The notes: generated by a model not told the origin, from the letters alone. A stretch of 64,000 bases of DNA from Adineta vaga (GCA_021613535.1 CP075497.1:3968001-4032000), one strand, 5' to 3'; positions 16,948 to 44,112 are shown, counted from the stretch's first letter. Program-made: numbers and translations.

Positions 16948-19166
16948 ATGACAACGAACCATATCCCATTATCAGTGATTGCTAAATGTGCATCATGTTC
17001 TATTAAAACTAATCTTTTTATATGTTCACATTGTGATCAAGTTATTTGCCAGACATGTGTGGATAAACATCAGTTAAAACTTCATGAAACATTGAAAGAA
17101 CAATGGGATTTATGTAAAACAAAATATGAAGATTTAAATCAATTAGCAGGTACAGAAACAAAAACAATAAGTTTGATATTCTATTTTGAATTATTTGATG
17201 TGTAGATCATTATGATAAAGATGTAATTCATTTTGAGAATGAAATAGAACAAATTCGATCAACGATCGATCAACGACGTTTGAATCTGATACATTTAGTT
17301 GAGAATGAGAAAAATACTTTATTAAATAAAATAGAAGAATATATTCAAATAAATCTTTCAAAGTAAAAATGAAAATCAAGGTTTGGTTTTTGAAATAAAA
17401 CATTCTTTTTGTTTTTATATAGTGTTCGACATACAGATCTTCAACAATTGTATGATTCGATTAATCAACGATTAACTGCTGTCTTTCAGTAAGACGAATA
17501 TTTCCATTTTAGCTTTGGAAAACGTGTTTTGATTTAGAAATTCTGATACAACTTGTAATACCGATGATTTTCTTTTGGAAATTCAATATTTCAATACTTT
17601 AATCTATGATAGAGAAAAGCAAATACAGACGATGGTGTTTAAAGTAAGGTTTCTCATCTCTCTCTCTCTATATATATCTGTCATTTTAATCGCTTACTAA
17701 CATCTTTTGTCTTATTGTTAATCATTGTGACTGGAAAAAGAAGTGTGAAATTACTTCTAGAATCATCGATGTATACAAATAGGAGAGAAAGATCTTTTAT
17801 TTCTTTATAGTACCCTTATTTATCCCCTCCAAAACCGCTAAGTATATCTGATGTCTTTGGTCAATTACAATGGACTTCTAAAGCAATGTCGAATACGATT
17901 TTGACTAGACCGTCAATCATTTCTAGTCGATCATTAAATTCAATCGTATATGAATCGTTTTCAAACGACACTCAAAATGACTTTCAAGAAACTTCGACAA
18001 TGTTACCAGAAGATTCAATATCATTATTATCATCTTCATCAGCATCCTCATCCTTACCTATCACCCAAAGACAAAAACAATGGACCACTGATGCAGCTGG
18101 TGTACCTCATTTTCTTTCTGTACTTTCCAAGAAAAATCATCTTCTTTTCGCTTGTGATAAATTGGGTTCTATTGATTTATATCAACTTGATGGGAATTCA
18201 CCTAAAAATGCTCCTCGTCATTTACGTCATTTCGAACTATTTCCTGGGAATACAACGAGTAAACAACCACAAATTATTGAAACATTTACAGTCTATACAC
18301 CATATATTGTCATTGCAGCTCGTATGTTTATATTCTTGATTGAAAGAAATCATTTCATTGAAATTTTCTAGATTTAAGTGATCAAACTGATACAAGCTCG
18401 ATATATTTTTTTGATCATCGTGGTTATCAACAGGGAGAAACATGTATACAGAATTTTCCCGTTCGACAACTTTCTGCTGATGTTAGTTTTAAATGTTTAT
18501 GGGGAGTAGATCGTCATCAACATTTAGGTAAAAAATATGTGAAAATTTAATAATTTATTTCTATTCTATGAAGGACTTTTGTAGTTTATTATAATCAATT
18601 ACCTGTTAGTGTTCAACAGATTGGAGATTTTATGAAACAACGTGAGGAGTTTTTAAAATTTGGTCGAGATTTTGAACCAATTAGGTGATTGAATTGGAGA
18701 AATAGTGTTATAGAATGAATGCTTTTATATTTTTTAGAATAGCTCAAAATCAAACGGCAGTTGCAATTGTGGAACGAAATTCACAAAGTGCTCATATATT
18801 TGATAAACAAACAAAAAAACAGATCAATGAAATAGAAAATCTCTTACGTATCAAAGGAACATTTCGTCTATGGAATGCTTTAGTATGTTTGATTTAATAA
18901 TGTTTATTGAAAAGAGATTTGTATGTTTCTTTCTTTTCTAGCTTCGTAATGATAATTCTATGGTGCTTAAGTTAGATGAAGATTTACCTCCCAATAGTCG
19001 TCCGCCTTCGATAAATCATCTTATACTTGAATTAGATTCAAATGGTGCATCAATATCTCAAATTGAACGTACATCTGTCTTCGGTTTTGTTATTGGACCG
19101 AATGGTGAAATTCTTCTGGGTTGTAAACGTTATCAACAAAATGGATTAATTGAATGTTACATTTAA
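16948..19166 (+). CDS. Array member A: RING-less B-box-like/coiled-coil/beta-propeller protein (divergent TRIM-NHL-like)
   Basis: Starts MTTNHIPLSVIAKCASCSIKTNLFICSHCDQVICQTCVDKH. Coiled-coil exons have intron phases 1-2-2-0. Ser-rich linker, then QWTTDAAGVPHFL..LFACDKLG..LFP..., ending FGFVIGPNGEILLG..GLIECYI*. Confidence 0.85.
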
Positions 19167-19491
19167 CAAATCTTCTTTTTATGAACTATATATGCTATTT
19201 CGAACGATTTTTCGTTTAATTAGATCAGATACAGAGAGGCTTGATAATATCGATTGAAGTCTGTTTTCTTTCTTTTCTAGACCAATTTTTCTTTTCTTTT
19301 CTCCTTCTTTCTTTTTCAACATATTCTTTGCCACTCTTCTTAACAACGAAAAAGAAAAATGAAAGAATGTGCTGTTACTTTTTTGCTCTTTTCTTCTGAA
19401 AGGTTTAATCAGCGTCGACATATAAGTAAATTCTTATAGAAATCAACTTTATTTTAGATGCATATGTTCATTTAAGTTATACTAGGAAACA

Positions 19492-22400
19492 ATGTCTAGT
19501 TCAGATAATTGTCCAAACTGGTAAAAATTTTGTTGACATTTTTGAACAATGATATAATTTTTACTGTATATCTAGTGATAATATCTATGGTAATGAACCA
19601 CGTAGAATTCCATGGTAATAATATTGAAGGAAATACTTGTTTGATAATTGGATTTTTATTTGTTTTAGTGGTCATATTGTGTGTCATAAATGTTGTTTGG
19701 AATTGTTTAACAAAGAGGACAATACTCTGATATGTCCTGTATGTGATACAACACATTCATTTAAATCAAAAAATATATTTAAAAAGTCTTTACAACAAGT
19801 TCCTCACTCTAATTTTGGAAAGAAGACAACAATACGTGAAGTTGCTTTTGCGTCATCAATGGTAAGATTTTCTGATAACAAGAAAACAATGGAAAAGATT
19901 GATTGCTCATCGATTTATTTCCTTTGTTTGTAGCCAGTGGAAAAAGCGTCGGTTGCAGAAAAATCTGCGCATAAAGAAGTGAAAAAAGCAGCAGCAAATT
20001 TACCAACAGCTCCGCCGGGTGCACCACCAGAAGGAACACCAACGCATACTACTCCACCGCCGCCACCACCACCACCACCGCCTCCGGAACCTGTTGCTGT
20101 TATCGCTACTAAACCACCACCGCCAGTACCACTTATGCCACCAAGATCTTCCGTAGCAGATATTATGCCAAGATTAGCGAAACAAAAAATATCTATCACA
20201 CACAGTACACCTCCACCTTCTCTATTTAATGCAATTGTTTCTTCGCCAGCACCACTGCCACCACCAGCACCAGCACCAGCACCAACGGTATCAACACAAT
20301 CATTATCTGTGTCTGATGCCGTTATTGCACGTTGTCATAGTTGTGGTAATAAATGTCAAGTGATTGTAAGTTGATAAAATATACATTATTATTTTATTAT
20401 TTTTTTCTTATGTATCAATATCCTAGGTTTGTGAACATTGTGATCATTTTGTATGTCTTAAATGTGCTGAAGAACATCGAACAACAACAAAAGTTGATAC
20501 ACAAGATTTAACGAATAAATGGCAAGCATGTAAAAATAAATACGATACTTTACTTCAAAAACTAAGTAACTTGTTCTTTTTATCATCAAACATTCTTATG
20601 AATATTGACTATGAAATAATAATAGAGCAATACAATCATGATAGAACTCAAATTGAAAGTGATCTTGCTGCTATACGTGTTGCCATTGAACAACGTACAC
20701 GAGATGCTACGCAATTTGTTATTCAACAACGTGATTTCTTAATTGGACAAATAAATGAACATATTGATAACGAACAAACGGTGAACAGGTATTAGAATCA
20801 ATTTATTTCTATCTTCACTAATCTATTCTTTTATCCTTAGTATCAAACATAATGAATTAGCGAATGCATTTCAAAAAATACAAAATCGATATGATAGTGC
20901 TTTAAAGTAGGATATCTATCAACACTATTTGAGAGAAAAACGTTCTGTTATTTGTTTTTCTTTAGTGGAGAAGATATTGGTGCTTATACTCAGGATGATT
21001 TCTTGCGTGATATTCATGAACTTCAAAAACGAATGAATAAACGTAGTGATTTAATTGAAACACATATCTTAAAAGTAATTATTTTCATCAAAAAGAAAGA
21101 TATTCTGAAAAAGAATTTTCAATACATCATAGATTCCAACGATTACACGATATGAACGAGTAAATATCGAAAAACTACTCGGTGAACTTCGTTTCAATCC
21201 TCCAATGATGAATGGTATGACTAATTTAACTATATCTCCTTTATCAAACCATCAACATTTACCAAAACAAAATGGTTTTTCCGATCATTCTTCGAACTAT
21301 TCAAATAAATTTACATCGAATTCATCACCAAAAATGCCGCCAGGAATGCCTTCATCATCTGTTAATACGATTACACCACCAACAAATCACATTGCATCAA
21401 CAAATGATACAAATACACTGAAACCACTCATGGCCGAAACATATACAAATAGTACACTCGATGCATTTGATGAATTTCGTCGAATGGCAGCTCAAATTCA
21501 TCAACAATTTAATGCACCCTATAGTAAAGTAATCAATGCTGCTTCTTCACCGTCATCAGGTGCAATGCCAACATCAGAGAGTAATCCAATTATGAATGGA
21601 AACGATAAAAATTCGAAAACATTATTAACTACTGCGCAACCGAAAACTCTTCCGACTGGTACATTTGCTAAAGCATGGAAAGTTGAACATACCGCCGGTA
21701 CTTAGACTCTATTTATATACATTGAAATTTATCGTTTATATACTTTTAGTACCTAATTTTTTATGTATGACACCTTACCCGACACCGAAAATTTTTGTAG
21801 TTGATAAATATGGTAAAGTATCTATATGTAGCATTCCACCTAAACCAATTAAACAATTCGAATCTTATACATTATTTCCTAATGATACGGATGAATGGAT
21901 CGAATCTGTTGTTGCCTCATCTCGATTTCTTATTGTCTATTCTCGGAAAAAACAAGATACGATGACTGGTACATTATATTTTTTTACTCATGAATGTAAA
22001 TCCGTTTTACCAAATGGTATTCATCAAAGTATTCCTGTTCATCATATTTTATGTGATCAAAATGCCAATCGTCTTTATTGTTTGGATCGAATGCGTTGTA
22101 CGATCTATTATCATACATTACCGAATAGTTTAGGAGAAATTGAAACATGTATGAAAACTAGACGTGATTTTACACAATTTAATTCCAATTATACAGCTGT
22201 GAAAATGTTACAGAATGATGATATTTTAGGATTTTATGAACGAAATGATTGTACTGTACATTTATATGATAAACAAACAGCAGAAAAAATCGAAGAATTT
22301 AAATGTGAACATTTTATGGATAAATTCGAAAGTTGGGGAATTATTGGTATGATTAAATTTTGTTTTAAAAATCGAGTTTTGTTGAGATTGATGCCTTTTT

Positions 22401-22663
22401 CTTAACTTTAATATTTTGATTTTATTGTAGCGATTCGCAAAGATAATAACAGTCTCATCTTCAAAGTTGATGAACGTGCTGATCATGATGCTGTTACTCG
22501 ACAACATATTGTTTATGAAGTAAATCGATCAACAAAACAAATCATTAATAAAATCCAACTTAATTCAGTCTTTGGAATGATTATCGGACCAAGTAATGAA
22601 GTTATTTTGGGCATTCGTCAAACAAAAGAAAGCGGCATTGTTCAATGTTATCAAAGAAAATAA
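19492..22663 (+). CDS. Array member B: RING - polyproline - B-box-like - coiled coil - beta-propeller
   Basis: MSSSDNCPNC|..EPRRIPC|GHIVCHKCCLELFNKEDNTLICPVCDTTH; poly-Pro tract; CHSCGNKCQVI|VCEHCDHFVCLKCAEEH; ends FGMIIGPSNEVILG..GIVQCYQRK* (taa 22661-22663). Confidence 0.87.
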
Positions 22664-23260
22664 GAAGACACATTATGATGGATGAATATTCGAAGTAGAA
22701 TTAAAATTAATTTTTCGTATCTGTGTTAGATCAAAGTTCAAATTCAGGCAAAGTATCATCTCTAATTTGTATATTTTTGTTTTGTTACTGAAAAAAAGAA
22801 AAAGAGAAAGATGATGAATAACTGTGATTATTGATGAGAATGACAGTTTTGTTTTGTTAATGTTGATATATATATATGCATACTTTACTTGTTTATGATT
22901 ATATTTGTATGATCTCTAGTCAGGATTAAAAAAGACTTAGTTTTTTGTTCTGTTTTCATTCGCGTGAAAAGATATATCATGTACATAAACTTTCTTTGTT
23001 CATTTTTCTATTTACTTTCATTGTTTATGGTGATATGAGTGAAAGATATGAAGGAAACGAAAAAAGAGAGAAACAGAGAAGTTTACATTTTAATGTTCAT
23101 TTCACTTTCGTTTGTTTCTTCTTCATCTTTTTTTTCTCCATTTTATGTTTTTTCTTTTTCTATTGGTTATGAATAAACACGATGATTAGTTCTAAATCAC
23201 AAACAGAATCTCTTTTCTCGCCATTTTATTTCAAATCTTTCTTCTAGAAGTCCATGAAAT

Positions 23261-25870
23261 ATGTCCATATCACGCAATATTCTTTTATGTACAGTTTGTC
23301 AATCGTTATTTAATGTAAGTGTGTTGATATTCGATCTAATTCTCTTGATTTTCTTCATTCTACAAAAAGGATGCAAGACAATTGCGATGTGGTCATTCGT
23401 TTTGTTATCAATGTATAGTTTCACATTTTGATACAACATTGAACAGAATTATTTGTTTACGATGCAAGTAAGTCTTAACAAAACGATCTCTTATACTACG
23501 ATGACTAAAATGAATCGAATTTGGTAAATTCCTATTTGCGAACAACGAGTGAACTCATGAGTCTATCCATTACAAGACTAAAATTACATCCGAATTATCT
23601 CAATAACATTAAACGTGTGTTGTTTTTTCTTTTTCAGACGTATTCATCAATTTGATTCATTTTCTCATTTTGAAATGAGTTTAATTGTCGATGCATTTGT
23701 CATGTCATTAGTCAGTGAACATCGACGTAAAATTCCAATACCATCTACGCCATTATTAGCATTTACACTTGAACAAATTCTTGAACGAAGTCCAGCTCCA
23801 TTTCTTATTGCTAAATGTGCTCAATGTACAATTCGAAAAGAACTTGGTACGTATGAAAAAAACAGAGAGTAAAATCAAGATAAATTACTTTCTGCTGAAT
23901 ATAGTTGTTTGTCCAGAATGTGAACAAGTTATTTGTTTTGAATGCATATCTCAACATCAATTAATTGTAAATAGTAATGTTCAGGAAAATTGGGTGAAAT
24001 GTAAACAAATATGGAATTATATGTATGAAAAATCAAGTAAGGATTGAAACTATTTAAAAAAAAAAGAATATTGAGAAAGTTTGATTTTGTATTCAAGTGC
24101 ATTTTGATGAACAACAGTTTGATCTCGAATCTCATATGTATGAATTAAAATTTCGAATTGAAAAACGTTCAACTTTTCTTCTACAAATGATCGAAAAATG
24201 GCAAGATATTTATCAAAATAAACTCAATCAATACGCGCAGAAATACGAAAATATTCGAGATGAAATTATATCACATTATCAATCAATTGATCAACGTATT
24301 CAAATCTTTCTCAAGTTTGTGGAAAGATAGAAGAATTCTTTATCTCATCCTACATATCTTCTAGTTCGAAAGATCCCAATCCAATTAAAGCTGAACAATT
24401 TCTTCAAGAAATTCAAAATTTTAAAATGAAATTACGTCAAAAAGAAAAACAATTGGATCTTAATTTACATAAATTACCAAATTATTCTATTCCAGATTTG
24501 AATTCATCATTACTCGGAACAATTTCTATTCAAACAACTTCTGAACATTTACGATTTAGCCTTGATGATGATAATAACGAAGAAAATCAAATTCAAAATA
24601 ATAATGATGAAGACGAAAAAGAAGAAGCAGAATCTATTGAATTAAATAACCATGAAAGTATTAGTTCCAATGAAATTCCACAGCAAACCAATGAAGACTA
24701 CGAAAATTCATTACCAACAACGACATCATTCGAAAATCTTCCAAATAAAAAACTTCTTTGGTCTTTACATTTCAAATTCGTTCCACAATATATTGCACTC
24801 TATCGACAATCGATTTTATTTGCATCGGATCGTTGGGGATTTGTCAGGTAAATACTATCATTCATTTCGTATTCTCAGAAGATCGACATGAAACTTATTT
24901 TAGTACATGGACATATACAAATGCACGTAATAAACCAATACCAAAGAAATCTTTTGTTCTCTTTCCACAATTTCGAGTTGGTACATGGTCACGTGTCTAT
25001 GTTGAATCATTTAGTGTTTGTAAGTTTTATTGAATTCATTTATGAAAATTGTTCTTTCAAAATCATTTAGATAAACCATATATTTGTGTTTTTGTCAAAG
25101 GATCAGATGAATCACTTGCAAATTTTATTGCTTTTTTTACTCATACAGGACAATTACAAATGAAAGTAGAATACGATCATCGATATACACTTCGACAATT
25201 GATTTGTGATGAAAGTTCGAAAGGAAATTGTATATGTATGTAGAAAAATCTATTGTCAAAGTTATTTGTTTAATTCAATTCGATTTCAAGGGGCGGTTGA
25301 TCGTGGCATGCATTGCATTTATAAACATGATTTACCACGAAATAATAAAGAAATCAAAACTTGTTTATCGACACATAAAACAGCGACTCGTCTAAATGAT
25401 CGAACTTGTGATGTTATTCGAATGGCTATCAATCAAAATCTTCTCGCAATACTTGGTAAATTCAAATTTCATTGAGAAGATATTCATATTAAATGTATCA
25501 TTTTGCTTGTGATTTAGATTCTCGAACACAAATAGTCACATTTTATGACAAAGTAACTCAAAAAGAAGTCGGTGTTTATTCAGCAGATTGTTTACCAACC
25601 GGTGAAAATAAACTATGGCGTGTAGAAATCTTTCCAGATAATAGTCTTCTCTTACGTTTTGATGATAATGAACGTACCGGTGATCGTTCTCAAGTTATTC
25701 ATCATATTGTTGCACATGTTCGAAAGAATGAAATCAATGGCAAATATGAAGCTATTTCACAAATTCAAGCGACGAATGTTTATGGTTTTGCCATTGGTCC
25801 TGAATCGGAAGTTATTGTTGGTTTAAGAAAAGCAAATTGTTTCGAAGGTCTCATTAAATGTTATGTCTGA
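23261..25870 (+). CDS. Array member C: RING - B-box-like - coiled coil - acidic linker - beta-propeller
   Basis: MSISRNILLCTVCQSLFN|DARQLRCGHSFCYQC..IICLRCK|RIH; IAKCAQCTIRKEL|VVCPECEQVICFECISQH; ends YGFAIGPESEVIVG..GLIKCYV*. Confidence 0.87.
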
Positions 25871-26136
25871 TAGATAATTCGAAATAATTTAATTGTCTGA
25901 TATTCATTTCTTTCTTTCTTTTTTTGTTCTTGTTATTTTACGTCTTATTAGTTGTTTATATTTCCTACAAGTCAGATCATACAATTCCAATAGTAACGAT
26001 TTACTTTTCTTAGTTATTTTCTTTTTCTTGTCAGATTTAACTTTAAACAGTGTACATAAGAAACTTTATTGAACACGATTTACTTTTCAGATATTATCTT
26101 TCTATCAATGGAAAATTTAACATAGATATTTCAATT

Positions 26137-28532
26137 ATGATCAATACAAAACTTGTTACATGTGGATTGTGTCAAAGTTATTATGCTGATCCTCGACAAG
26201 TAACAATCTTTGTAAAGAAAGATTAGTTTATGATTGAATTTTTCAGATTCCTTGTTCACATTCATTTTGTTTTGATTGTATCTCCGGACGATTTAACGAG
26301 GAAACGTTAACATTAATTTGTCCAAAATGTGAAAAACTTCATCAATATAATTCATATGAAGAATTTCAAAATCGTTGTATGCGTGATGGTTTTCTTGCAT
26401 CAATGGTTGCTCAATTTAAAAAGAATCAAAGTCGATTATCAGGCTTAACATCTCGTCCATCTTCAACAATTTCACATATCTCATCTGTATCTTCATCGAC
26501 ACCAATTCCATTGATATCAAAACAAGAAATCAATTCCCATGAGCTATCAACTACTTCCCAACGTTCGACACCATCCATACCTCAACAGCAAAGACCAACA
26601 TCTGTTCTATCACAACAATCAACAGCACGTGTACTCATAGCTAAATGTCAATCATGTAATATTCGAGGAGAATTGATCGTCTGTTCTCATTGTGATAGTG
26701 TTATTTGCGTAAAATGTTCAAGTGAACATCAGAATATTCTCAATGAGGATATTAAACGTGAGTGGGATATATGTAAAACAAGATATGAAACAATCAATGA
26801 ACAATCATGTAAATTTTCTTGTCTTTTGTTTTCTAGGAAAAGAATATTTCTTTTTGATTTTAGTGCGTTATGATAATGACGAAAAAGAGATGAATAATAA
26901 AGCACGAAATCTTCAGATATTTATTAATAAACAAAGTGATCAATTAATACAAACGGTAGAAAATCAAAAAAACTTATATATGGATGTTATTGAAAAACAT
27001 CGACAAACTTATAAACAATCGTAAGTTGAATTATTCTTCTACACTAAAAATTTAGTGTATATCTAAACTTGATTTTAGTTTTACTCATGAACAATTTGTT
27101 GATGAATATGAATCAATTGATAAACGAGTTGACGAATTATTCAAGTATCTTATCGTTTATTAATCTCTTTTCATTCACTAAAGATTCGCTTTAGATCTGA
27201 TGATATCAATGCTGATAAAGTGAATGATTTCCTTTTTGAAATTGAACATCTTGAAGATCGTTTAGATAATTTAAATAATCTTCTTGATAGTAATGAAGTC
27301 AAAGTATGAACTTCATTTCTTTTGAATTCGAATTCTTTAATCTTCTTCCTTTAGTTTCCATTTCTCAGTCTACCTGAACAAATTGACGTATCTTCACTTT
27401 TTGGTACATTGAATTTCAATCATATAAATACTGACTCAACAAGATCTGATCCAACTTCATCTCAATTAACCAATGGTTATCATGATTCACAATCGAAATT
27501 TGAAGATGATGATTTTGTTGTTATTAATTCACCAAATAAAAATCTTATCTCCAAAAAAATCGAACAAAAATCATTACCAATACCTCATACACAAAAGAAA
27601 AAACTTCTCTGGCAAATTGAATATTTTTCTGTACCATATTATGTTCGAATCTTTGAAAATCAATTATTTATTTGTGATAAATATGGTTTGAGAATATCAA
27701 TATCAATGTTTTCTCATTAAAATTTCTTTTCTATTCAGGTTCATTAGCAATTTATAAGTTAACTAAATCAAATGATATTCGTCAAAAACCGATTTTACAT
27801 CGTGAAATAAAATTATTCAAAGATACTCCAAATTCCACAACAAACGATGAAGATCAAACAATTATTGATTCATTTACTGTTTATAAATCCTGGATAATTG
27901 TATTTAAACGTAAAAAAAATGAATTACACGGTACAATTTATTGGTTTACATTCGATGGAAAATTAATTCCAAATGGTAAATGTTTACATCATCATCCTTC
28001 ACGTGAATTAACAATTGATCTTGAAAAAAATATTCTTTGGTCCTTAGATCAAAAACAATTATCTCTATTTTATTATGATTTACCTGAAATTAAATTAACA
28101 AATCCACAAGATTGTCTTCAAATTCGTCATTCTCATGTACAATTTTCTAAACCATTTGCACCGATACATATATCCGTGAATAAAAATGCTTTGGCTGTCT
28201 TAGATAAAAATCGTCAAGCTATACATGTGTATGATAAACAAACCAAACAAGAAATCTATCAATATATTAATGTTCATAGCAAATCAACACATTTCTGTTG
28301 GGATATGGCTTTGTTTTCTGATAATAGTTTACTGATTAAACTTGATGAAATGAGTACATTGAGAACAGGACCATCAAAACATATTTATCTACAACTTGAT
28401 ACTAGTCCACAACATCATATCATTGGAACGATTGAGGAAATCGATGCATATGGCATGATGATTACATCAACGGATGAAATTCTCATTGGTATTCGAGTGA
28501 ATACCAAAGGCATTGTCAAATGTTATGTTTAA
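26137..28532 (+). CDS. Array member D: RING - Ser-rich linker - B-box-like - coiled coil - beta-propeller
   Basis: MINTKLVTCGLCQSYYADPRQ|IPCSHSFCFDC..LICPKCEKLH; IAKCQSCNIRGELIVCSHCDSVICVKCSSEH; ends YGMMITSTDEILIG..GIVKCYV*. Confidence 0.88.
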
Positions 28533-28695
28533 CTATCAACAATTTTATTAGTTTTTTTCTTTTTTTTTTGTGTAATTTACCTTGTCTTATAGTACAAATG
28601 ACACACATATACATATATATATATATATTAGATGTATTCGACAAAAGAAAATAAACATGAGCCTGTATATGAGTTTTGATTTATTCTAGAATAGA

Positions 28696-31534
28696 ATGGC
28701 TTGTTATCTTCCCGATCATCTTGTTCGATGTGTACTATGTAAAAATTTGTTTTCTGATGCTCGTCGTCTTCGTTGTGGTTGCGTTTATTGTTATTTATGT
28801 TGTTTGAAACTTGTTGATAATTATACATTATCATGTCTTTGTTCTACTATACATCGATTTAAATCACAAGATGAACTTGAAAAGGTGATTGAATATTTAA
28901 GATCTCAAAAGGAAACTATTGTATTCATGAAACATTCTACGAGTTGTCGAAGGAGTACTATTCTATAGTTTTCTGCTTTTCTATCTAGACTTTAGTAATT
29001 GATAGTGTTGTTAATGATCTCGTAAGTCAACATATTAAACAAAAACAAGTTTCATCAACAAAATTAGTTGATTATGATGTGATTTCGAATTCACCTTCTC
29101 TAATAGAAGATAACAATAATATAAATGATCATCAAACAACGATTTCAACTTTATCATCGACTATTCTTTCGAATCGACGTAAACAAGTGGCCGTTGCTCA
29201 ACCACCTTGTACGATTTGTAAGAAAAAATCTCATATGATTATTCTTTGTGAACATTGTAAATGTGATATATGTGAATTATGTATTGAACAACATTATCAA
29301 TCTATTGCTGATGTTCTTGATGATAAATGGAAACAATGTAAAGAAAAATTTCATCAAATTAATGAACATGTCCGTACGTACATTTGTTTTTTTTCTCTTC
29401 TTCTTCTTCTTCTTCTATTTTACTTCAATTCATAAGAAGAAAAGACGATATATATATATATTCAAATTGTCATTTTTTATGTTCAGTATTATCACATCAA
29501 AATAAAACGGGTGCAATATCGAAACTTGATACTATACGAAAAACGATTGAAGAGAGAAGTCAAAATTTGAAAACCATCATTGATCAACATCGACAATTAT
29601 TAGCTAAGCATATTGATAGTCATGTTCAGAATCTTGAGCAAATGTAAATGAATTCATATTGTCTTTCGTTTATTTCTATTTGATGGATTTATTAATTTTT
29701 TTAGAATCAAAACTAATTCTGTAGATCATGAGTTTCAAGTGATCAGAGAACGTCTTCCGAAAATGTTCGAGTAATAATATTACAATTAAATGAAAGCTCA
29801 TGTAACAATAAATAATAATGTGTTTTAGAGAAGAAACCAATGTACCTGATTTAGTGTCGTTTTTAGAAGAAACAGACGGAATTTTACAAAGATTAATTCA
29901 ACGTGATACACAATTAAAAGAAATTGAAATGAAAGTAAGATTAAGTGAAAATCACAATTCCTAACCATTAATTACTATTTTAGATTCCTTATTTATCTCA
30001 ACCAGATGCAATTTCAATCAATCTTTGTCATTTAATCGGTGAACTTAAATTTGATGATCAACCATCATACATGAAACAAGTAACAACATCAACTATTAAT
30101 CATGAACGAGAATTAAAGCCGAATGAGAACGATCTATCACCATTGATGTCAATAGAAACTGAACGGACACGTTTTCCACGTCGTATGCGACCATCGTTTC
30201 GAGCACGTGGTGGACATGGTATTCAGCATTTATCTCATTTAACCGATCCCAGTCTTCGAAATAATTATTCTCCACGATATACACGGTAAGTACATCGTAT
30301 ATTCTCTCTATCAATATCTATACAAATTTGCTTTTAGATACAATGGAAATCATTATTCTCGTACTCCATTACTTCAATCAAATGAAAATAATCTTGATGT
30401 TGTTCCCAATAATCAATATCAATGGTCAATAGATTTCAAAGAAATTCCATATTTTCTTTCTGTTCTCGACAATCGTAATCGAGCTCGACATCCTGATACT
30501 CGTCCTCATCATAAACACGATTATATGTTATTTATTGCGGATGATTATGGTCAAATGGGTATATATAGTCTACCAAAATATCGTAGTAATATTCAACCAT
30601 CCATTATTGGTACAGGAGAACTTTTTCCAAAGAATTCTCGTATACTATTGGAATCATTTACTGTCTATGAATTTGCTATTGTTGTTTATGTACGTCGTTT
30701 TGAACAAAGATCCAATGAAATTGAACATTCGAAATTAATGAAAGCTGGTTTACCAATCATGAAAGGCGAACAAGTATGAGAGAAATTTCTTTGAAAATAA
30801 ATCTATTGTCTTTTCTGGAATAAGGGTCGATGCAATGATCATGGTGGAATGATTTATTTATTTTCACATGGTGGTGATGAAATTGAAGGAGTCTATCAAT
30901 CTCATCCCATACGAGTTATTCTTGCTGATCAAATTTATGGTCGCCTTTGGGCTCTTAATCCAATGGCGAATAATGTTTATTGTTACATGACACCGAATCA
31001 AACTAGTGAAATTCGACAATGTTTACAAGAAGAAGAAAACATTCTGGATTTTTCTGAAGAATCATTTGAACCATCGACAATGATTCAATCTGATCATGCA
31101 ATTGGTTTATTTGATGTTGAACGTGATGTTTATCGTTTATATAGTAAAGATGATAAACTTCGTTTAATTACAACCTATGAAAATTCACATAATCAACAAT
31201 GGAAATTATCTGGAGGAGTTATTTATAAAGATAATCGTAGTTTACTTAAATTAACTGAAGATAAATATTATAATAATAATTTAAATGAAAGATTAAGAAG
31301 AAATAAATTTCATAATAATCCACGACGTCGTCTTATTGAATTAACTAAAGATGGACAAGAAAAACGTCAAATTCAAGCAAATACATTGTATAGTATAACA
31401 CTTGGTAAATAGTTTTTTTTTCTTTAAATTAAACAAAGAATTATCTATGTAACGAGACTTTTATAGGTCCTGATGATGAACTTATTTTGGGTTTTGTTGT
31501 TCGTGGTGATCGTGGTATGATTCATTGTTATTAA
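28696..31534 (+). CDS. Array member E: variant RING - B-box-like - coiled coil - Arg-rich linker - beta-propeller
   Basis: CVLCKNLFSDARRLRCGCVYCYLCC..LSCLCSTIH; CTICKKKSHMIILCEHCKCDICELCIEQH; last exon GPDDELILGFVVRGDRGMIHCY* (taa 31532-31534). Confidence 0.86.
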
Positions 31535-31978
31535 CTTTATTCAAGATTAAATAATTCTATAGAGAACTGAAAGTAAAAGTTTTTTCAGATATCTTTTCTC
31601 TCTTCATGTTTATTTTAAATATTATATGTATAATTTTCAAGTATATCTTTTTTTTCTTCATCTAGAACAAAGTTTTTTCGCGATATGTTTTTTGTATGTA
31701 TCGGAACAAAAGAAAATAAAACGTCAAATATTTGTTTTGTGATAAACTAGTTGTTCAATAGTGAGTTTCAGTGTATTTTTGTTGTTGTTATTCTATTCAA
31801 TTAATAGATAAAAGAAAAACAATAGATAAAATAAAAGATTCATTTCATGGATATTAAATAATAATGAAAATTTCGATCATGTTATAACTAATGCCATGAG
31901 TTCTGCATAAGAGTCAATTCAAACTCTATGTATTTCTTTCTATAACATGTAAAAAGCTACTAAAGAATATTATTGCAG

Positions 31979-33727
31979 ATGATTATACAAGAAAATTTAT
32001 GTCGTGTGTGTTTGAAAATATTCAATGATCCAAGATGGTTACCATGTAAACATATCTATTGTTTTAAATGTATTCCATATTTACAATGTAATGATTCCAA
32101 TCTCAAAGATCAAGTTGTATTAGAATGTCGTATTTGTTTACGACGTCATCGATTTAAGGAATGGTCAGCAGTGAAATATTATGTGACATTACATTGTGTA
32201 CCATATTTGACTGCTTTACAATTTGATAAAACAATAAATTCAATAGCAAAGTTTTCATGTCCAAGTTGTTTTAATGTGATGATGCAGATTTCAAATGATG
32301 AACTATTGAAATATTGTTTTCATTGTAAGAAAAATATATGTCAAGAATGTTTTATGGAACATCGAATGGAATTGAAGAAGAATATTTTACAAAGAATTGA
32401 TCAATGTTATGGATTAATTCGAAGAAATCAACAAGATGTTGAACAAACGATGAATAAATTGGAAAATATGAAATTACATATTGATTTTTGTGCCTTTGAA
32501 TTCAATGATCAGGTTCTTTTAAGTTTATATCCTCTTAAATCATAAGATCTAAGTTTATTTTAATTAAGTAATTCGTAGATCGATACATACTGTGCTTCAT
32601 TACGTGCTCAAATCGACGAACAAAAGTAAATACAAATTGTATTTAAGTTCTCCTGTACTGTTTATCATTTTAATAGATCACATGAAGAAACTGATTCTAG
32701 TTCTGGTTATGAATCTTTCACTGACCAACAAACTATCGAGTAAGTTCAGTGAATATCAAAACATATTAATGGCAATGATTAATTTAGAAACAATCATCCT
32801 CCTGCAGATCATTCATTATCGATACAGAAAAATATGGTATTAACAGAATCAACAGTAATACCTATTCGTTTACTTGGTGAACTAATATCATCGAATTCAA
32901 GTCAATCAATTTTATCTACATCACAAATACTTTGGACAATGACTTGTCATTTCCATCCAACATATATTGTATTCGAACTTGATTCATCGAAATTATTTAT
33001 CTGTACTGATTGTGGTGATGTCTCTGTTTATCATTACAATGCATCAAGTTTGATACTTTCACATAGATTTCATTTACAGACGAAGAAAACATCAATTTCT
33101 CTTGTTATTAAATCATTGACAGCTTCTACATTCTCTCTTATGGTTGTTTTCAATTCATCAGTTGAATCGATTCTTCATTTTTATTCACATACCGGTCATC
33201 TATTACACAATCTCTTATTTTCAAATGAATATATCAATCAAATTCGTTTTCATCATTCTAATTTATGGTGTCTTGAATTAATTTCATCCTCACTTTTCTA
33301 CTTCAAACTTCAATCAATTGATAAAATTAACGAACAAGATTTTGAAAAAGTACAATTTATATCATTCAAACAAATGTCATTTCAACCCTTTCGATTTGCT
33401 CTAAATCAATCATTCGTAGCAATTATGGATCGATTACCAACTGGAATTATTCTTCTCTATGATAAACATACAAGTGAATATTTAAAACAAATTAAATCTC
33501 CACTTAATGACTTACAAGCATGTGATTTTGAACTTACCAATCATACATTAATCTATCGTTTTCTTCATTTGATACTACTAATTCAATTAGATAATGAACA
33601 AATTCGAGAACAAATCGAAGCAACTAAAAATATAAATCTAACGAAAGGAAAATCTGCAGATGAATTTATTATCAGTACATTTACGAATGATCATAATATA
33701 TTCATCATTCAATGTTTTAGCAAATAG
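31979..33727 (+). CDS. Array member F (most divergent): RING - B-box-like - short coiled coil - beta-propeller
   Basis: CRVCLKIFNDPRWLPCKHIYCFKC..LECRICLRRH; CPSC..CFHCKKNICQECFMEH. Two small exons join in frame to ORF 32834..33727 (LLGEL, LWTM..HP, LFICTDCG, FYSHTG, F.PFRFALNQ, LYDKHT, IIQCFSK*). Confidence 0.82.
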
Positions 33728-33791
33728 TTTTACATTTTTATAGATTCATTTTATTAAACATTTGTTATATAATTTTAGATTTCATAAAATC

Positions 33792-35758
33792 ATGCCATCA
33801 TTTACACGTGAATTTGTATCATGTCATGCTAAATCATTCGAATCTCATCTATACAATGATCCCGTGATGCTTAGTTGTAGTCATGTCTTTTGTCGTTCAT
33901 GTTGTTTTGATTTAGCACGAATGAGTCAAGATCAATATGGTATATTTGATTTGGAATATAAGATAGAATAATAATAAGAATACAATGTTTTAGTCATCTG
34001 TCCGATCTGTTCAACTCGAATTCCATTTGATAATGTCAATCGATTTGCAATTAATCTGATATCACATGGAACATTAGCAACGATGGTAAAACAATATTTA
34101 CGAGAAGAATCTCTTCATCCTATTTGTTATTCTTGTCAAAATAATAATGTAAATAATGAAACGAGTAAATTATGTAATAAATGTCAGATTGAACAAGAAA
34201 ATATTAAATTGAAAATCATCGAAACAATGAAGAAATGTGATAAATTAATATTAAATCAAAAACTAATTTCATTAGATAGCATTCATGAAGATATTAATCA
34301 ATTGTATACGGTGATTGATCGACGAACATTAGATTTTAATGAAACAATTGAACGATATCAAAGAGAATTGGAAGATTTACTAATCAAACAACAAAAAGCA
34401 AATGAATTTAATGGGTAAATCTTCTGATTTCTAATTATTAGATATAGAAAGTTTTCGTTTTTCAGATTGAAACATCAACCAATCGACATTGAAATTGTTT
34501 CGGAATTTGTTGAACCTCGATTAAATGCTTTGAAGTATGTTTACTTCACAGATAGTTGTATTTATCAATATATGATACATCTTATTGTTTTAGAGAAAAT
34601 AAAAATTTTCTAGAAAATCTCAATGTCGGAAAAGAAATCAAACGTTTAAATGAAGAAGCTGATAGACAACTTCGATTGCTCAAACATCGAGCCGACATCG
34701 TACGTTTGATTCTCATAAAACCTGATTCTATTAACAATAATCTACTTCTATTCTAGGTACCCGTATTCTGTCCTTCAACAATGAAACCATCGGCACATAT
34801 GTTTGGTGAACTTCTTTTCAAATATAAAGATCCAGAATCCAAATCACCAAAGTTATCAACTAATCAATCGATGATCAATACATCTGGTGATACTTCACTT
34901 CAATCTATTCCATCAAAACTTCCAATGTGGACTGTAATTGTCAATGCTCTACCTACTCATCTATGTGTTTATCCCGTTGGTAAATCGACATTAATTTTTA
35001 GTTGTAGTTCAACAGGTATTATCTCTCTTTTCAATTACATTTCACCAGTTACATATGATTCTCCACGATATATTCGTACATTTCATCTTTTTCCTGAACA
35101 ATCTCGTATTTATGTACAATCATTTGCTGTATTCAATCGTTTTATGCTTGTACATATTCGTGAAAAAGATCATCAGGATTCACTTTATTTCTTTACACAT
35201 GATGGAATTCTTGAATATGGACCTATTCAATTATCAAATCTTATTCGTCAATATCTTGCTGATGAAAATCGTCTTTGGGCAATTGATTCGATGACACAAA
35301 CAATATTCTTTCATGCTCAACCATTATTTACTCATGAAATATCAACTATACTTTCAAAACATGAACAATTCATATCTTTTGATGAGCAATCGAATTTTAT
35401 TCCATTTCGTATTGCAATTAATCATCAATTATTAGCAATACTTAGTAAAGATCTTCAACAAGTGTATATTTATAATAAAATATCACGGGAACGAATTTTC
35501 GTTAGTCATTTCACAGCAGGAATGAGTACAAATATTTGGGATATTGGTTTATTTCCACGTGATAATAGTTTATTATTAAAATTCGATTGTTCATTTGAAG
35601 GAAATGTTAAACGATCTTTATTTATACATTTTAATACAAAAAATCAATCGGTTGGACGAATTGAAGGTAAACATTGTTTAGGTGTTGTTATTGGACCGAA
35701 TAAAGAAATATTAATTGGATTTAATCTACGAACAGGAATAATACGTTGTTATATGTAG
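33792..35758 (+). CDS. Array member G: degenerate RING - truncated B-box-like - coiled coil - beta-propeller
   Basis: MPSFTREFVSCHAKSFESHLYNDPVMLSCSHVFCRSCC..|VICPICSTR; CYSC..CNKC only. Propeller exon has LFP, YFFTHDG, LWAID, FIPFRIAIN, WDIGLFPRDNSLLLKFD, and ends GVVIGPNKEILIG..GIIRCYM*. Confidence 0.85.
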
Positions 35759-41312: not shown

Positions 41313-42497
41313 ATGTCTTTACCATCGACTCAGCATGAGGCACTTGCAAATCTTGATCCTTTACTTCAACCATTTGAAGATATCAATGATAATCCAACAT
41401 ATTCCGATCAACGATCATCTTTTTTTTATACACCTGCGAATGTTATTATCGAAAACAATAATTCTAATAAACAATCGACTCTTCTTCCAAGAATTCTTCA
41501 TTATTTAGAAAGATTTTCTGGTATTTTCTATTCCTTAATTGCTTCATTACTATTTACATGCTCAAATTTTATCATTCAACAATTAGATGTCGTTTTATTA
41601 GATGTCTTTCTCGTTCGTTTTGTTATACAAGGATTTTTCTCATTTGGATATATTCTTTATAAAGGTTATCATCCATTCTCTTCAAATTATCATAATTTAC
41701 TAATATTAATTCGATCAATTATCGCTGCGATGGGTAGTATTTGTTTTTATCTTGGACTTGACCTTCTTCCTCTACCTGATCTAATTACTATACGATATAC
41801 ACAAGTTGTATGGACAGCTATTTTATCTTCGATTATATTCCGAGAACGCCTTACTTTACCAACAATAGTCGCAAGTATTTCAACACTTCTTGGTGTTGTT
41901 TGTGTTGCACAACCATCATTTCTTTTTACTAAATCAAATATTACGAATGGAACATTATCAATACCGATGAATAATAATAGTAAACAACATATTTCAGGTA
42001 TGTTTATTGCAATGTTATGTGCTATATCAATATCTTTGGGTATCATCTTAATGAAAAAATTACTTGAATATAAAGTTCGTGAAAGTATAATGATGTTTTA
42101 TTTTATTTTAACAACGTTTTCTCTTCTCCTAATTAAACAAATTCATTTTTGGATATTTTCAAAAACGAATCATCGAAAATTTCATATTCCAACAATCTAT
42201 TTAACAAAACATTTCATTGCTGCAACAAGTCTTGCTACATTACAATTAATTCCTATGGTTTTAACACAAAAAGCAATTAAACGTGAACATCCATCGATTG
42301 TGACAGTTGTTCAAGCAACGGATATAATTTTTGCTCTGATCTTAAAGAATATTTTCTTAACCGAGAAATCTAATAGATTAGCTTTAATTGGTTCAACATT
42401 AGTTCTTATCAGTATTTTTATACTTGGCGGACATAAATTTTGGTTAGATCGACGAAATCGTATCCGTCTTTCAACTAAAATTGAAGAAACGAACTAA
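41313..42497 (+). CDS. EamA/DMT-family 10-TM transporter (SLC35G-like), intronless, copy 1
   Basis: 394-aa ORF with about 10 hydrophobic helices. Contains RFVIQ, LPLPDLITIRYTQVVWTAILSSIIFRERLT, GVVCVAQPSFLF and AIKREHPSIVTVVQATDIIFA. Confidence 0.88.
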   Translation: MSLPSTQHEALANLDPLLQPFEDINDNPTYSDQRSSFFYTPANVIIENNNSNKQSTLLPRILHYLERFSGIFYSLIASLLFTCSNFIIQQLDVVLLDVFLVRFVIQGFFSFGYILYKGYHPFSSNYHNLLILIRSIIAAMGSICFYLGLDLLPLPDLITIRYTQVVWTAILSSIIFRERLTLPTIVASISTLLGVVCVAQPSFLFTKSNITNGTLSIPMNNNSKQHISGMFIAMLCAISISLGIILMKKLLEYKVRESIMMFYFILTTFSLLLIKQIHFWIFSKTNHRKFHIPTIYLTKHFIAATSLATLQLIPMVLTQKAIKREHPSIVTVVQATDIIFALILKNIFLTEKSNRLALIGSTLVLISIFILGGHKFWLDRRNRIRLSTKIEETN

Positions 42498-42903: not shown

Positions 42904-44112
42904 ATGAAGCAGGAAACATACATAATTGAAAATCATGATTTGATAGATGCCATTATAACGGATGATGAAAAGGTATGTAATGGTGATCCTTTAATTGAAC
43001 CATTGATCGATGCGGATGAATTAAAAGTGAATGTAAATGAAGATAAATCTTTGAATGAAAAAATTGATGTTTATAAACCAAAAACAACAACAAAATTATC
43101 TTCTCAAATTATTAAACGATGTACGGGTATATTTTATGCACTTTGTGGTTCATTTATTTTTACATGTTCCGGTTTCTTAATTAAACAATTACGTGTTGAT
43201 TTTTTCGATGCACTTCTCGTTCGATTTCTTCTACAAACCATCATCTTATTCGTCTTTATTCTTTATAAAAAAAATAAATTCATACATGGTTCAAATCAAT
43301 TAATTCTTCTACAAATCGTTCGTACAATCGTTGGAACAAGTGGATTATTCTTATTCTTTCTAAGTTATCGTTATATTCCATTACCTGATCTTACAACATG
43401 CCGTTATACTCAAGTCATTTGGACAGCTATTCTAACAATGATTATTTTTCATGAACGAATATCAATCGCAACTAGTTTAGCAATCATATTTACACTAACT
43501 GGAGTTACATTAGTTGCTCAACCAACATTCTTATTCACTAATTATCAATCAAGTACAAATCAAAGTAAAATTCTATCTAATCAAATAGCGGATATCGATT
43601 TCGAATCGGATAAATCTTATCGTTTACTTGGTCTATGTCTTGCACTTGGATGTGCATTATCGATATCATTCAGTATGGTTTTAAATAAGAAATTAATCGT
43701 ATCAAAAATTCCTCAAAGTGTTATCATGTTCGAATTTTCTTGTTTAACTTTTATTCTACTGATTATTAATCATATCTATAATCGATTTATTCTTGATAAA
43801 TATGTAAAACAAACGATGTTCACCTGGCAATTCTTTCTCGCTGCATCTGCTTCGTTAATGCAAGTATTTTCCTCAACACTTACACAACGTGCAATTAAAC
43901 TTGAAAATCCTTCGATTATTTCTGTTGTTCAATCATCTGACATACTTTTTGCAATTATCTTACAAAATCTTTTTTCCAAAGTTAAATCCAATTGGTTCGT
44001 ATTAATCGGTTCGTTTTTAGTTACAACAAGTATTTTTCTCGTTGGAGTTGATAAATTTTGGAAAGATCGAAAGAAATTTTCAAGAACATATCAATCAAAT
44101 ACAAAATTATAA
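42904..44112 (+). CDS. EamA/DMT-family 10-TM transporter (SLC35G-like), intronless, copy 2
   Basis: 402-aa ORF collinear with copy 1: IPLPDLTTCRYTQVIWTAILTMIIFHERIS, GVTLVAQPTFLF, AIKLENPSIISVVQSSDILFA. Confidence 0.88.
   Translation: MKQETYIIENHDLIDAIITDDEKVCNGDPLIEPLIDADELKVNVNEDKSLNEKIDVYKPKTTTKLSSQIIKRCTGIFYALCGSFIFTCSGFLIKQLRVDFFDALLVRFLLQTIILFVFILYKKNKFIHGSNQLILLQIVRTIVGTSGLFLFFLSYRYIPLPDLTTCRYTQVIWTAILTMIIFHERISIATSLAIIFTLTGVTLVAQPTFLFTNYQSSTNQSKILSNQIADIDFESDKSYRLLGLCLALGCALSISFSMVLNKKLIVSKIPQSVIMFEFSCLTFILLIINHIYNRFILDKYVKQTMFTWQFFLAASASLMQVFSSTLTQRAIKLENPSIISVVQSSDILFAIILQNLFSKVKSNWFVLIGSFLVTTSIFLVGVDKFWKDRKKFSRTYQSNTKL

Follow-up and report, generated by a model that had tools for sequence, protein, structure and literature searches.

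The domain order RING, B-box, long coiled coil and C-terminal six-bladed propeller is known from the TRIM-NHL (class C-VII TRIM) proteins TRIM32/Thin (Abba), Brat and Mei-P26 (no filamin domain). The TRIM family accepts members without a RING, and Brat is one of them. In vertebrates, the clustered immune TRIM genes, such as TRIM5/6/22/34 and the fish finTRIMs, encode PRY-SPRY domains, turn over quickly and are under positive selection. Here we describe an array of seven genes, A to G, at 16948-35758 on the plus strand of a 64,000-nucleotide window of the Adineta vaga genome (GCA_021613535.1 CP075497.1:3968001-4032000); all positions are counted within this window. The encoded proteins have an order like that of TRIM32/Thin, Brat and Mei-P26, and gene A resembles Brat in the absence of the RING. 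The array differs from the TRIM32/Thin type in possessing a single zinc finger, in the long disordered linkers that flank the B-box/coiled-coil unit and in the absence of a detectable NHL repeat signature. It is probably an ancient, bdelloid-only tandem array of seven TRIM-type paralogs, each of which ends in an NHL-type six-bladed propeller that has diverged beyond recognition by sequence.

Gene structures and common descent

The seven genes, each given below from its start ATG to its stop, are intact, contain introns that are GT-AG without exception, and encode products of 527-854 aa; the same-strand genes with intact frames that a first-pass annotation had placed at these seven ATGs are therefore all present. 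Splice models of A, B, C, E and F were curated by hand together with RNA joints, and the models of D and F give proteins identical to the annotated I4U23_028493 (P0094) and I4U23_028495 (P0002), respectively. Database searches and folding used either exons or these two annotated proteins; for A, B, C, E and G, the joined models served in the alignment, the tree, the dN/dS estimates and tblastn against selected loci.

Gene A (16948-19166, 555 aa; nine exons, 16948-17149, 17206-17362, 17423-17488, 17538-17643, 17811-18321, 18372-18527, 18585-18684, 18738-18882 and 18942-19166) opens at a B-box-like finger (16987-17070), followed by a coiled coil, a linker and a propeller (from 18075). No exon for a RING is visible within 1.3 kb upstream of A, and the start of its Rotaria ortholog (P0001) is likewise RING-less. 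Gene B (19492-22663, 854 aa, 11 exons) encodes a RING interrupted by introns (19510-19744), a proline-rich linker, a B-box-like finger with an intron inside it (20333-20477), a coiled coil, a long Ser/Asn/Pro linker and a propeller (from 21670). Gene C (23261-25870, 663 aa, 10 exons) encodes a C3HC4 RING (23288-23465), a B-box-like finger also containing an intron (23816-23957), a coiled coil, an acidic linker and a propeller (from 24753). Gene D (26137-28532, 693 aa; seven exons, 26137-26199, 26247-26808, 26864-27020, 27079-27144, 27195-27303, 27355-27685 and 27739-28532) encodes a RING (26161-26330), a post-RING helix (26355-26438), a disordered linker (26439-26633), a B-box-like finger (26646-26729), coiled-coil helices (26709-27291) and a propeller (27604-28529). 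Gene E (28696-31534, 762 aa; nine exons, 28696-28884, 28989-29373, 29487-29643, 29705-29770, 29829-29934, 29984-30285, 30338-30773, 30825-31404 and 31467-31534), whose joined ORF is intact, encodes a variant RING (28729-28842), a B-box-like finger (29208-29294), a coiled coil, a basic linker and a propeller (from 30417) with an insertion of ~35 aa. Gene F (31979-33727, 527 aa; exons 31979-32512, 32579-32625, 32677-32739 and 32788-33727) encodes a C3HC4 RING (32000-32137), a B-box-like finger (32258-32362), a short coiled coil and the most divergent copy of the propeller (from 32927). Gene G (33792-35758, 581 aa; exons 33792-33939, 33994-34414, 34466-34534, 34594-34699 and 34757-35758) encodes a degenerate RING, half a B-box, a coiled coil and a propeller (from 34922) that lies within one 1002-nt exon.

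Spliced transcripts of E, F and G are present among assembled RNA contigs, the form in which all RNA evidence was used, from three runs of three studies, and the array is thus expressed in at least these three genes. Seven of the eight introns of E correspond to contig joints (runs X1, X5 and X6), and the second was placed with a two-piece contig of X6. The first intron of G is confirmed by contigs of X1 and X6, and introns 2 and 3 of F by a contig; in the sole observed transcript of F, intron 1 has its acceptor at 32568, which brings a TAA into frame, unlike the annotated model. Contigs cover the 3' end of D. A pseudogene or annotation artefact is ruled out by the intact ORFs, the spliced transcripts and dN/dS values well below 1.

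Pairwise protein identity between array members in the alignment is 20-33%, and similarity at the DNA level is limited to two short patches, one between A and D (109 nt, 71%) and one between A and G (53 nt, 81%), in keeping with the first-pass statement that no obvious DNA repeats are visible. The series of intron phases 1-2-2-0 across the coiled coil, noted there for A, B, D and E, is exact in all four; G has 2-2-0, and C has 1 and 2. The listed motifs (IAKCxxC..., L.GEL, W....P..L, D..G.I..Y, LFP, ESF.V, FFTH.G, YDK.T, DNSLL.K.D and GP..E...G..G.I.CY) recur in most or all copies. On the basis of these common motifs and phases, the genes arose, as had been claimed, by tandem duplication from a single ancestor that had the RING, B-box, coiled coil and propeller. 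The further claim of one architecture in all seven copies has exceptions in A, which has no RING, in G, with its degenerate RING and half B-box, in E, with its variant RING, and in F, in which the coiled coil is much shorter.

Distribution, gene order and selection

A profile of the propeller searched against 1.84 billion representatives gave 76 matches, every named one of them bdelloid, and a search of the N-terminal half of D against 5.8 billion sequences returned only D orthologs. In these sequence searches the family is found only in bdelloids. Neither orthology nor alignable similarity was found to LIN-41/TRIM71, TRIM2/3, TRIM32/Thin, Brat, Mei-P26, NHL-1, NHL-2 or Wech, and searches of the literature on rotifer and bdelloid TRIM, B-box and NHL families turned up nothing on the family of the array. 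The cluster is undescribed and lineage-specific, as the first-pass annotation had proposed.

In the tree, A, B, D, E, F and G each pair at 100% support with non-Adineta sequences, which come from Rotaria or Didymodactylos records (A, D, E and G) or from metagenome records (B and F). The ortholog of C is a 658-aa gene at the same position in a Rotaria locus (L015), with propeller exons 84-98% identical, and the propeller exons of B show 85-86% aa identity with the same locus. A synteny comparison found the gene order B-C-D-E common to A. vaga and Rotaria. Across the propeller exons, Adineta and Rotaria are 78-98% identical, with pairwise NG86 dN/dS of 0.02-0.25 at dS 0.4-0.7 (A. vaga versus Rotaria sp. 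Silwood1: B 0.14, C 0.16 and 0.02, D 0.19, E 0.25), and the exons are under purifying selection. The A. vaga genome contains 7 + 2 + 2 copies, about 11 family members, a small and stable number; genome duplication was followed mostly by loss of copies, not by expansion. Because each paralog has orthologs across bdelloid genera and the order is kept in Rotaria, the divergence within the array is old and not ongoing. Recent tandem duplication is ruled out by the 20-33% identity and by the existence of an ortholog for each copy. An old and maintained array had been predicted correctly, and the recognition propeller, which had been described as diversified, is instead strongly conserved between genera.

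RING, B-box, coiled coil and propeller

The full C3HC4 RING pattern is present in B, C, D and F. Pfam RING models are passed by D (PF00097, 27.2 bits against a cut-off of 21) and by F (PF13445, 28.1-31.4 bits against 25.2), and the RING of D with its following helix matches the RING of L008, a canonical A. vaga TRIM-NHL gene, at a pairwise E of 7e-7. The variant RING of E has C-x-C at the usual place of C-x-H, and it ends in a C-x-C pair instead of CxxC. In G the RING is missing its first CxxC pair and the B-box is reduced to CxxC-x12-CxxC, and a pattern scan of G found no RING or B-box pattern.

The single finger that was first described as CxxC-x8-CxHC-x4-CxxC-x3-H does exist, but its "CxHC" is a C-x2-C pair, C-S-H-C. 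The seven ligand columns of the resulting pattern, C-x2-C-x8-C-x2-C-x4-C-x2-C-x3-H, are invariant or nearly so in 19 family members, and we take this spacing to fit B-box type 1 and not the type 2 that is usual beside TRIM coiled coils. UniProt names the orthologs "B box-type domain-containing protein". With the Pfam model zf-B_box (PF00643), exons of A (21.8 bits) and E (15.8 bits) both score under the cut-off of 24.1, and full-length D gives no match at E <= 0.01. A Foldseek comparison of the N-terminal model with PML B-box1 gives an rmsd of 2.0 over 35 columns at an E of just 2.3. Nothing is matched by the N-terminal model of D in Foldseek at E <= 0.001, the best match being the RING of TRIM2 at E 0.05.

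The N-terminal AF2 model of D consists of the RING, a disordered linker, a small zinc-finger fold, a long helix of 86 residues (176-261, pLDDT mostly 87-96) and two return helices (264-283 and 289-315). Residues 148-345 modeled as two copies gave an ipSAE of 0.49, against 0.00 for the best control, with at least 78% of contacts agreeing between runs and a partner pLDDT of at least 70. The contacts 237-237, 225-251 and 218-255 describe an antiparallel pair centered on residue 237. The calibrated mark for the dimer score is reached by 21 of 30 solved same-chain pairs and by none of 23 single chains, and by just 7 of 16 animal pairs. This coiled coil therefore models as a TRIM-style antiparallel dimer, a result that may reflect the presence of solved TRIM coiled coils in the training of the predictor.

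The AF2 model of the D propeller (pLDDT 90.8, pTM 0.88) has 24 strands, which form six blades. Foldseek on this model, a check that the first-pass annotation had proposed, finds NHL domains of TRIM-NHL proteins as the nearest solved folds: the first seven PDB matches are those of Thin, TRIM3, TRIM2, TRIM71 and Brat (E 5e-8 to 1.5e-7, TM 0.55-0.63), with WD40 proteins also among the matches. VIA-align against 48,161 chains places Mei-P26 at the top (Z 20.6, rmsd 3.8, 243 aligned), followed by Brat (Z 20.0), TRIM2 (19.5), NHL-2 (19.2) and TRIM71 (19.1), the TRIM-NHL matches having rmsd 3.4-3.9 over 237-243 aligned positions. The NHL domains of Thin, Brat and Mei-P26 are thus among the top structural matches. 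In a language-model feature search, the nearest ESM Atlas clusters carry PF01436 NHL (0.94, 176 shared features), and a shape-based search of the Atlas gave nothing but generic propellers.

Origin, function and comparison with known systems

It is unlikely, yet conceivable, that the genes do not derive from TRIM-NHL at all and that, on the bdelloid stem, a gene with RING, B-box and coiled coil gained by capture a six-bladed propeller of unrelated origin, for example one from a different propeller family, the likeness to NHL being that of common six-blade geometry. The propeller has no significant sequence link to NHL: Pfam NHL (PF01436) has no match in array exons or full-length proteins, where generic propeller matches, to IFT122 and WDR19, stay below threshold; comparison of the family propeller with ten canonical NHL domains of A. 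vaga in hhalign yields a probability of 4.9%; and the family HMM searched against PDB sequences reaches Brat at a nonsignificant E of 0.95-1.6 and the WD40 protein UTP4 at 0.0045. Other six-bladed propellers (PAL, PknD, teneurin and lactonases) follow closely in VIA-align at Z 17-19, so the TRIM-NHL margin is only 1-3 Z. Against capture, TRIM-NHL domains lead Foldseek, VIA-align and the feature search, the domains follow the TRIM-NHL/TRIM32 order, and the best-matching RING is that of TRIM2. The Brat NHL domain is moreover the sole non-WD40 PDB sequence caught by the family HMM, over an NHL-repeat-like stretch, F.P..I..N...LAVLDK..Q.IH.YDK. The original description of the array as TRIM-NHL-derived is therefore supported by fold and architecture and not by sequence, and in the propeller itself the resemblance to an NHL domain looks like one of fold only.

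The array had also been read as a defense battery, an E3 cluster whose propellers diversify against pathogens, viruses or transposable elements in the manner of clustered vertebrate antiviral TRIMs. A tandem TRIM-like cluster with very divergent propellers would suit such a role, which has been proposed for bdelloid multigene expansions, NHL included (PMC3846280). The reading is very improbable: every paralog has orthologs across bdelloid genera, the order is stable, propeller dN/dS is low, and the small family, mostly reduced after genome duplication, compares with more than 2000 first-look candidates for canonical NHL repeats. A conserved and slowly evolving family does not fit a fast-changing defense battery, and on present evidence the array reveals no new immune system. 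Slow evolution, ortholog by ortholog, instead suggests fixed roles in the cell or in development and not the recognition of pathogens. The proteins might also be post-transcriptional regulators like Brat, Mei-P26, LIN-41 and NHL-2, whose propellers bind RNA motifs and repress mRNAs and whose RING is dispensable, a reading that differs from our preferred one only in the ligand and in the importance of ubiquitination. The RNA-binding NHL domains of Mei-P26, Brat, NHL-2 and TRIM71 are top structural matches, A has a RING-less, Brat-like layout, the propellers of C (pI 9.0), G (8.6) and D (8.2) are basic, and strong conservation is compatible with fixed RNA targets. Nevertheless, we consider this reading rather improbable: calculated from sequence, the propellers range in pI from 6.4 to 9.0 with a small net charge (-4 to +9), E and F being acidic, and the protein-binding NHL domains of TRIM2, TRIM3 and TRIM32/Thin match equally well.

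For an ancient TRIM-type array with NHL-type propellers, we propose a mechanism modeled on that of TRIM-NHL and TRIM32-type proteins. The long helices would pair antiparallel to form homodimers, possibly heterodimers, so that each end carries a RING/B-box unit together with a propeller. The RINGs of B, C, D, F and perhaps E would recruit E2~ubiquitin, and the propeller of each paralog would bind a separate, conserved ligand, either a protein or an RNA. The RING-less A and RING-degenerate G could be Brat-like noncatalytic binders or partners of RING-bearing copies; the absence or noncanonical form of the RING in two or three of the seven proteins counts against the ligase view. It is a speculative and quite unlikely extension that the array is a coregulated, perhaps partly polycistronic module predating the bdelloid radiation, in which A and G pair through their coiled coils with the RING-bearing B-F in mixed combinations. 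If so, bdelloids would possess combinatorial, lineage-specific ligase or RNA-regulator complexes, with a possible tie to desiccation recovery or to germline maintenance without meiosis.

The array indicates that a whole TRIM-type branch can drift until its recognition domain escapes sequence profiles and is detectable only by fold, so that little-studied phyla may have larger TRIM-NHL-like repertoires than have been counted. Bdelloid biology gains seven conserved, uncharacterized putative regulators with clear orthologs in Adineta, Rotaria and Didymodactylos. Intact RING, variant RING, no RING and half B-box together form a natural series of TRIM scaffolds with and without catalytic parts.

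The canonical TRIM-NHL genes of A. vaga (genome G000), L008 (C5:15.87 Mb, RING/B-box/CC/NHL) and L007 (C1:7.48 Mb, B-box/CC/filamin/NHL), have the tripartite layout in common with the array. In L008, the positive control, Pfam detects NHL at 1e-16 and a B-box above cut-off, and the same tool detects neither in the array proteins; the array is thus a separate, far more diverged lineage and no copy of L008 or L007. The bdelloid NHL-repeat expansion (PMC3846280) likewise consists of six-bladed propeller proteins in the same genome, but its more than 2000 first-look candidates lie in other genomic places, and the sampled genes are mostly textbook-NHL propellers of ~300 aa, some with other N-terminal regions, without RING, B-box or coiled coil and at an hhalign probability of 4.9% to the array propeller. 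With the vertebrate immune TRIM clusters the array shares tandem TRIM-type genes with divergent C-terminal recognition domains, and it differs from them in its propeller, its one-to-one orthology across genera and its dN/dS of 0.02-0.25.

Gene structures and common descent of the array

The seven genes of the array, A to G, all lie on the + strand of an AT-rich window (~29% G+C; C6:3968001-4032000 of the A. vaga genome) and have introns of ~50-60 nt. Gene models were produced with a splice-aware script and then corrected manually and with RNA joints; they place gene A at 16948-19166 (555 aa), gene B at 19492-22663 (854 aa), gene C at 23261-25870 (663 aa), gene D at 26137-28532 (693 aa), gene E at 28696-31534 (762 aa), gene F at 31979-33727 (527 aa) and gene G at 33792-35758 (581 aa). 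As the first-pass annotation had stated, the frames are intact: all seven spliced models are uninterrupted, and every intron is GT-AG. The models of D and F are identical to the database proteins I4U23_028493 (our P0094) and UJR35746.1 (I4U23_028495; our P0002), and database searches and folding used these two proteins or single exons, with the spliced models of the other five genes kept for local analyses only. Downstream of the array, two adjacent single-ORF genes on the + strand (41313-42497, 394 aa, and 42904-44112, 402 aa) encode clearly paralogous multi-pass membrane proteins and form another tandem pair.

A seven-way alignment contains all of the motifs previously listed for the array, at pairwise identities of 20-33%. 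The intron-phase series 1-2-2-0 across the coiled coil occupies the same alignment columns in A, B, D and E, and is partly kept elsewhere, as 2-2-0 in G and as 1 and 2 in C. The exons bounded by these introns are near-constant in size, at 66 or 69 nt and then 106 or 109 nt. DNA-level matches between array genes are limited to two short patches. The shared motifs, phases and exon sizes, together with the low identity and scant DNA similarity, make the earlier proposal of an old tandem duplication sound. The accompanying description of one architecture needs correction for the RING, B-box and coiled coil, which deviate in A, E, F and G. Gene A is without a RING, there is no RING-like sequence within 1.3 kb upstream of it, and its Rotaria orthologue likewise begins at the B-box. 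Gene G keeps neither the first Cys pair of its RING nor the latter half of its B-box, the RING of gene E has Cys in place of His and a C-x-C last pair, and the coiled coil of gene F is short. Exon 4 of gene B (19937-20374) encodes a long, proline-rich stretch that connects the RING to the B-box and includes eleven consecutive prolines, whereas the linker at this position in the other copies is Ser/Thr-rich or acidic.

A predicted TRIM-type N-terminal half and NHL-like propeller

The RING scores above the Pfam cut-off in D and F. The B-box is below the cut-off in the array proteins; its ligand columns, C-x2-C-x8-C-x2-C-x4-C-x2-C-x3-H, vary little or not at all among 19 family members, and several orthologues carry the UniProt label of a B-box protein. 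The AF2 model of residues 1-345 of D opens with a RING and a helix, continues through disorder at residues 84-150 to a small finger (153-175), and then forms a helix of 86 residues (pLDDT mostly 87-96) followed by two return helices. Such a predicted arrangement is typical of TRIM proteins. Foldseek searches with this flexible model were weak, with the RINGs of TRIM2, TRIM25, TRIM23 and TRIM21, the KAP1 tripartite motif and PML B-box1 as the top rows. When D 148-345 was modeled in two copies, ipSAE was 0.49 compared with 0.00 for the best control. In calibration, the pass mark was reached by 21 of the 30 solved same-chain pairs and by none of the 23 single chains, but by only 7 of the 16 animal pairs. 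The predicted contacts are antiparallel and centered near residue 237, with at least 78% agreement across runs and partner pLDDT of at least 70. The pass of the D coiled coil may reflect memory of solved TRIM coiled coils.

The C-terminal ~290 aa common to the seven proteins escape sequence recognition. Pfam yields only sub-threshold matches to the IFT122 and WDR19 propellers, a family HMM run against PDB sequences reaches the Brat NHL at E about 1, and hhalign against ten canonical A. vaga NHL domains returns a probability of 4.9%. The AF2 model, based on a 26-row alignment, is a propeller whose 24 strands fall into six sets of four (pLDDT 90.8, pTM 0.88). The top seven Foldseek matches in the PDB are all NHL domains (Thin, TRIM3, TRIM2, TRIM71 and Brat), and WD40 proteins follow closely. 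The independent method VIA-align ranks Mei-P26 first (Z 20.6), followed by C. elegans C45G9.5 (20.4), Brat (20.0), TRIM2 (19.5), NHL-2 (19.2) and TRIM71 (19.1), and other six-bladed propellers trail at Z 17-19. In the ESM Atlas, PF01436 is carried by the clusters that lie nearest in language-model features (0.94, 176 shared features), and a search by shape gave a generic result. Because the modeled fold is clear and the sequence tests failed, we class the domain as NHL-like by fold and place it outside the NHL sequence family. The suggested derivation from TRIM-NHL proteins is supported by fold, according to AF2, Foldseek and VIA-align, and by architecture, but not by sequence comparison with Pfam, hhalign or HMM.

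Relatives, selection and expression

A search of 1.84 billion representative proteins with the propeller profile returned 76 matches only, and all of the named ones belong to Adineta, Rotaria or Didymodactylos; an F-box protein whose propeller is NHL-like (E 7e-4) is among the weakest. The A. vaga members are the seven array genes, a pair related to A and D on chromosome C3, and two distant members on C2 and C5. At the homoeologous (duplicated) locus, C3:11813528-11818349, the A-like and D-like (I4U23_014551) genes adjoin on the same strand, with no counterparts of B, C, E, F or G within ~15 kb. A Rotaria sordida protein of 1181 aa (P0095) has two propellers, A-like then D-like, and looks like an annotation fusion of such an adjacent pair. 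On a Didymodactylos carnosus contig (L016:1-5786), A-like and E-like genes are neighbors. The A-like gene is annotated as 1633 aa (P0086), with PHD and bromodomain matches before the B-box, coiled coil and propeller; either the fusion is genuine or the annotation has merged two neighboring genes.

In the maximum likelihood tree, A, B, D, E, F and G are each paired with non-Adineta sequences at 100% support, and D falls into two duplicate clades, each with Adineta and Rotaria. The synteny comparison proposed at first pass found the order B-C-D-E shared with Rotaria, where it is kept on a single strand at a Rotaria sp. Silwood1 locus. Between A. vaga and Rotaria the propeller exons are 78-98% identical, with NG86 dN/dS of 0.02-0.25 at dS of 0.4-0.7; for the coiled-coil/linker part of C the value is 0.39. 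The proposal of a defense cluster with a diversified recognition propeller fails these tests, given the orthologues of individual paralogues, the kept gene order and the low propeller dN/dS.

Expression was assessed from contigs of three RNA-like runs (three studies) and a DNA control run over 28400-34399, from the 3' end of D to G. GT-AG introns are skipped in the RNA contigs and retained in the DNA run; the introns observed are those of E, the three introns of F and intron 1 of G, and coverage also reaches the 3' end of D. For intron 1 of F, the sole contig observed (RNA-like run X1, depth 3.8) joins 32512 to 32569, using the AG at 32567-32568, 10 nt upstream of the annotated AG at 32577-32578. 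Exon 2 then opens with an in-frame TAA directly after codon 178, so the F product would be cut to 178 aa, comprising the RING, the B-box and a short helix. Regulation through an unproductive isoform, or relaxed use of F, may explain this splice form. The spacers between the seven genes (19167-33791) measure 325, 597, 266, 163, 444 and 64 nt. Within 0-20 nt before most array ATGs lies a pyrimidine-rich tract whose last bases are AG, with TTGCAG immediately before the ATG of F. The X1 contig of E begins 8 nt ahead of the ATG, at position 28688, and the E 3' UTR extends to at least 31783. These features fit an operon or trans-splicing; the RNA contigs over 28400-34399 showed none that bridged two genes and no spliced-leader letters. 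Within E, contigs of X1 and of the DNA run X8 diverge at 29138 and 29786 with near-identical loose ends, and these shared departure points indicate that the sequenced lines carry this part of E in a second form, either a divergent haplotype or a structural variant.

A probable bdelloid branch of TRIM-type proteins

The best explanation of the array is an ancient, bdelloid-only lineage of TRIM-type proteins whose propeller is cryptically NHL-like, and our literature search found no published description of such a family in rotifers. The proteins would act as coiled-coil dimers that would couple the RING, where present, to a conserved, paralogue-specific ligand. This ligand could be either protein or RNA: the best structural matches of the modeled propeller are RNA-binding NHL domains, but the propellers are unexceptional in charge (pI 6.4-9.0).

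An expansion of NHL genes was reported earlier (PMC3846280). We found 2148 first-look candidates for textbook NHL-repeat genes in A. vaga, and all 150 that were scored exceed the Pfam cut-off. They include a tandem run of NHL propeller ORFs of ~320-360 aa at C4:9604000-9613999 (L006), and two C1 loci (L009 and L010) encode NHL propellers fused to other N-terminal regions. Two further loci served as positive controls. One, C5:15870500-15876000 (L008), encodes a canonical TRIM-NHL protein with RING, B-boxes, coiled coil and NHL (Pfam NHL 1e-16); the other, C1:7478000-7483000 (L007), encodes a B-box, coiled coil, filamin-like region and NHL and is likely of the LIN-41/TRIM2-3 type. The array belongs neither to these canonical TRIM-NHL genes of A. 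vaga nor to its textbook NHL-repeat expansion.
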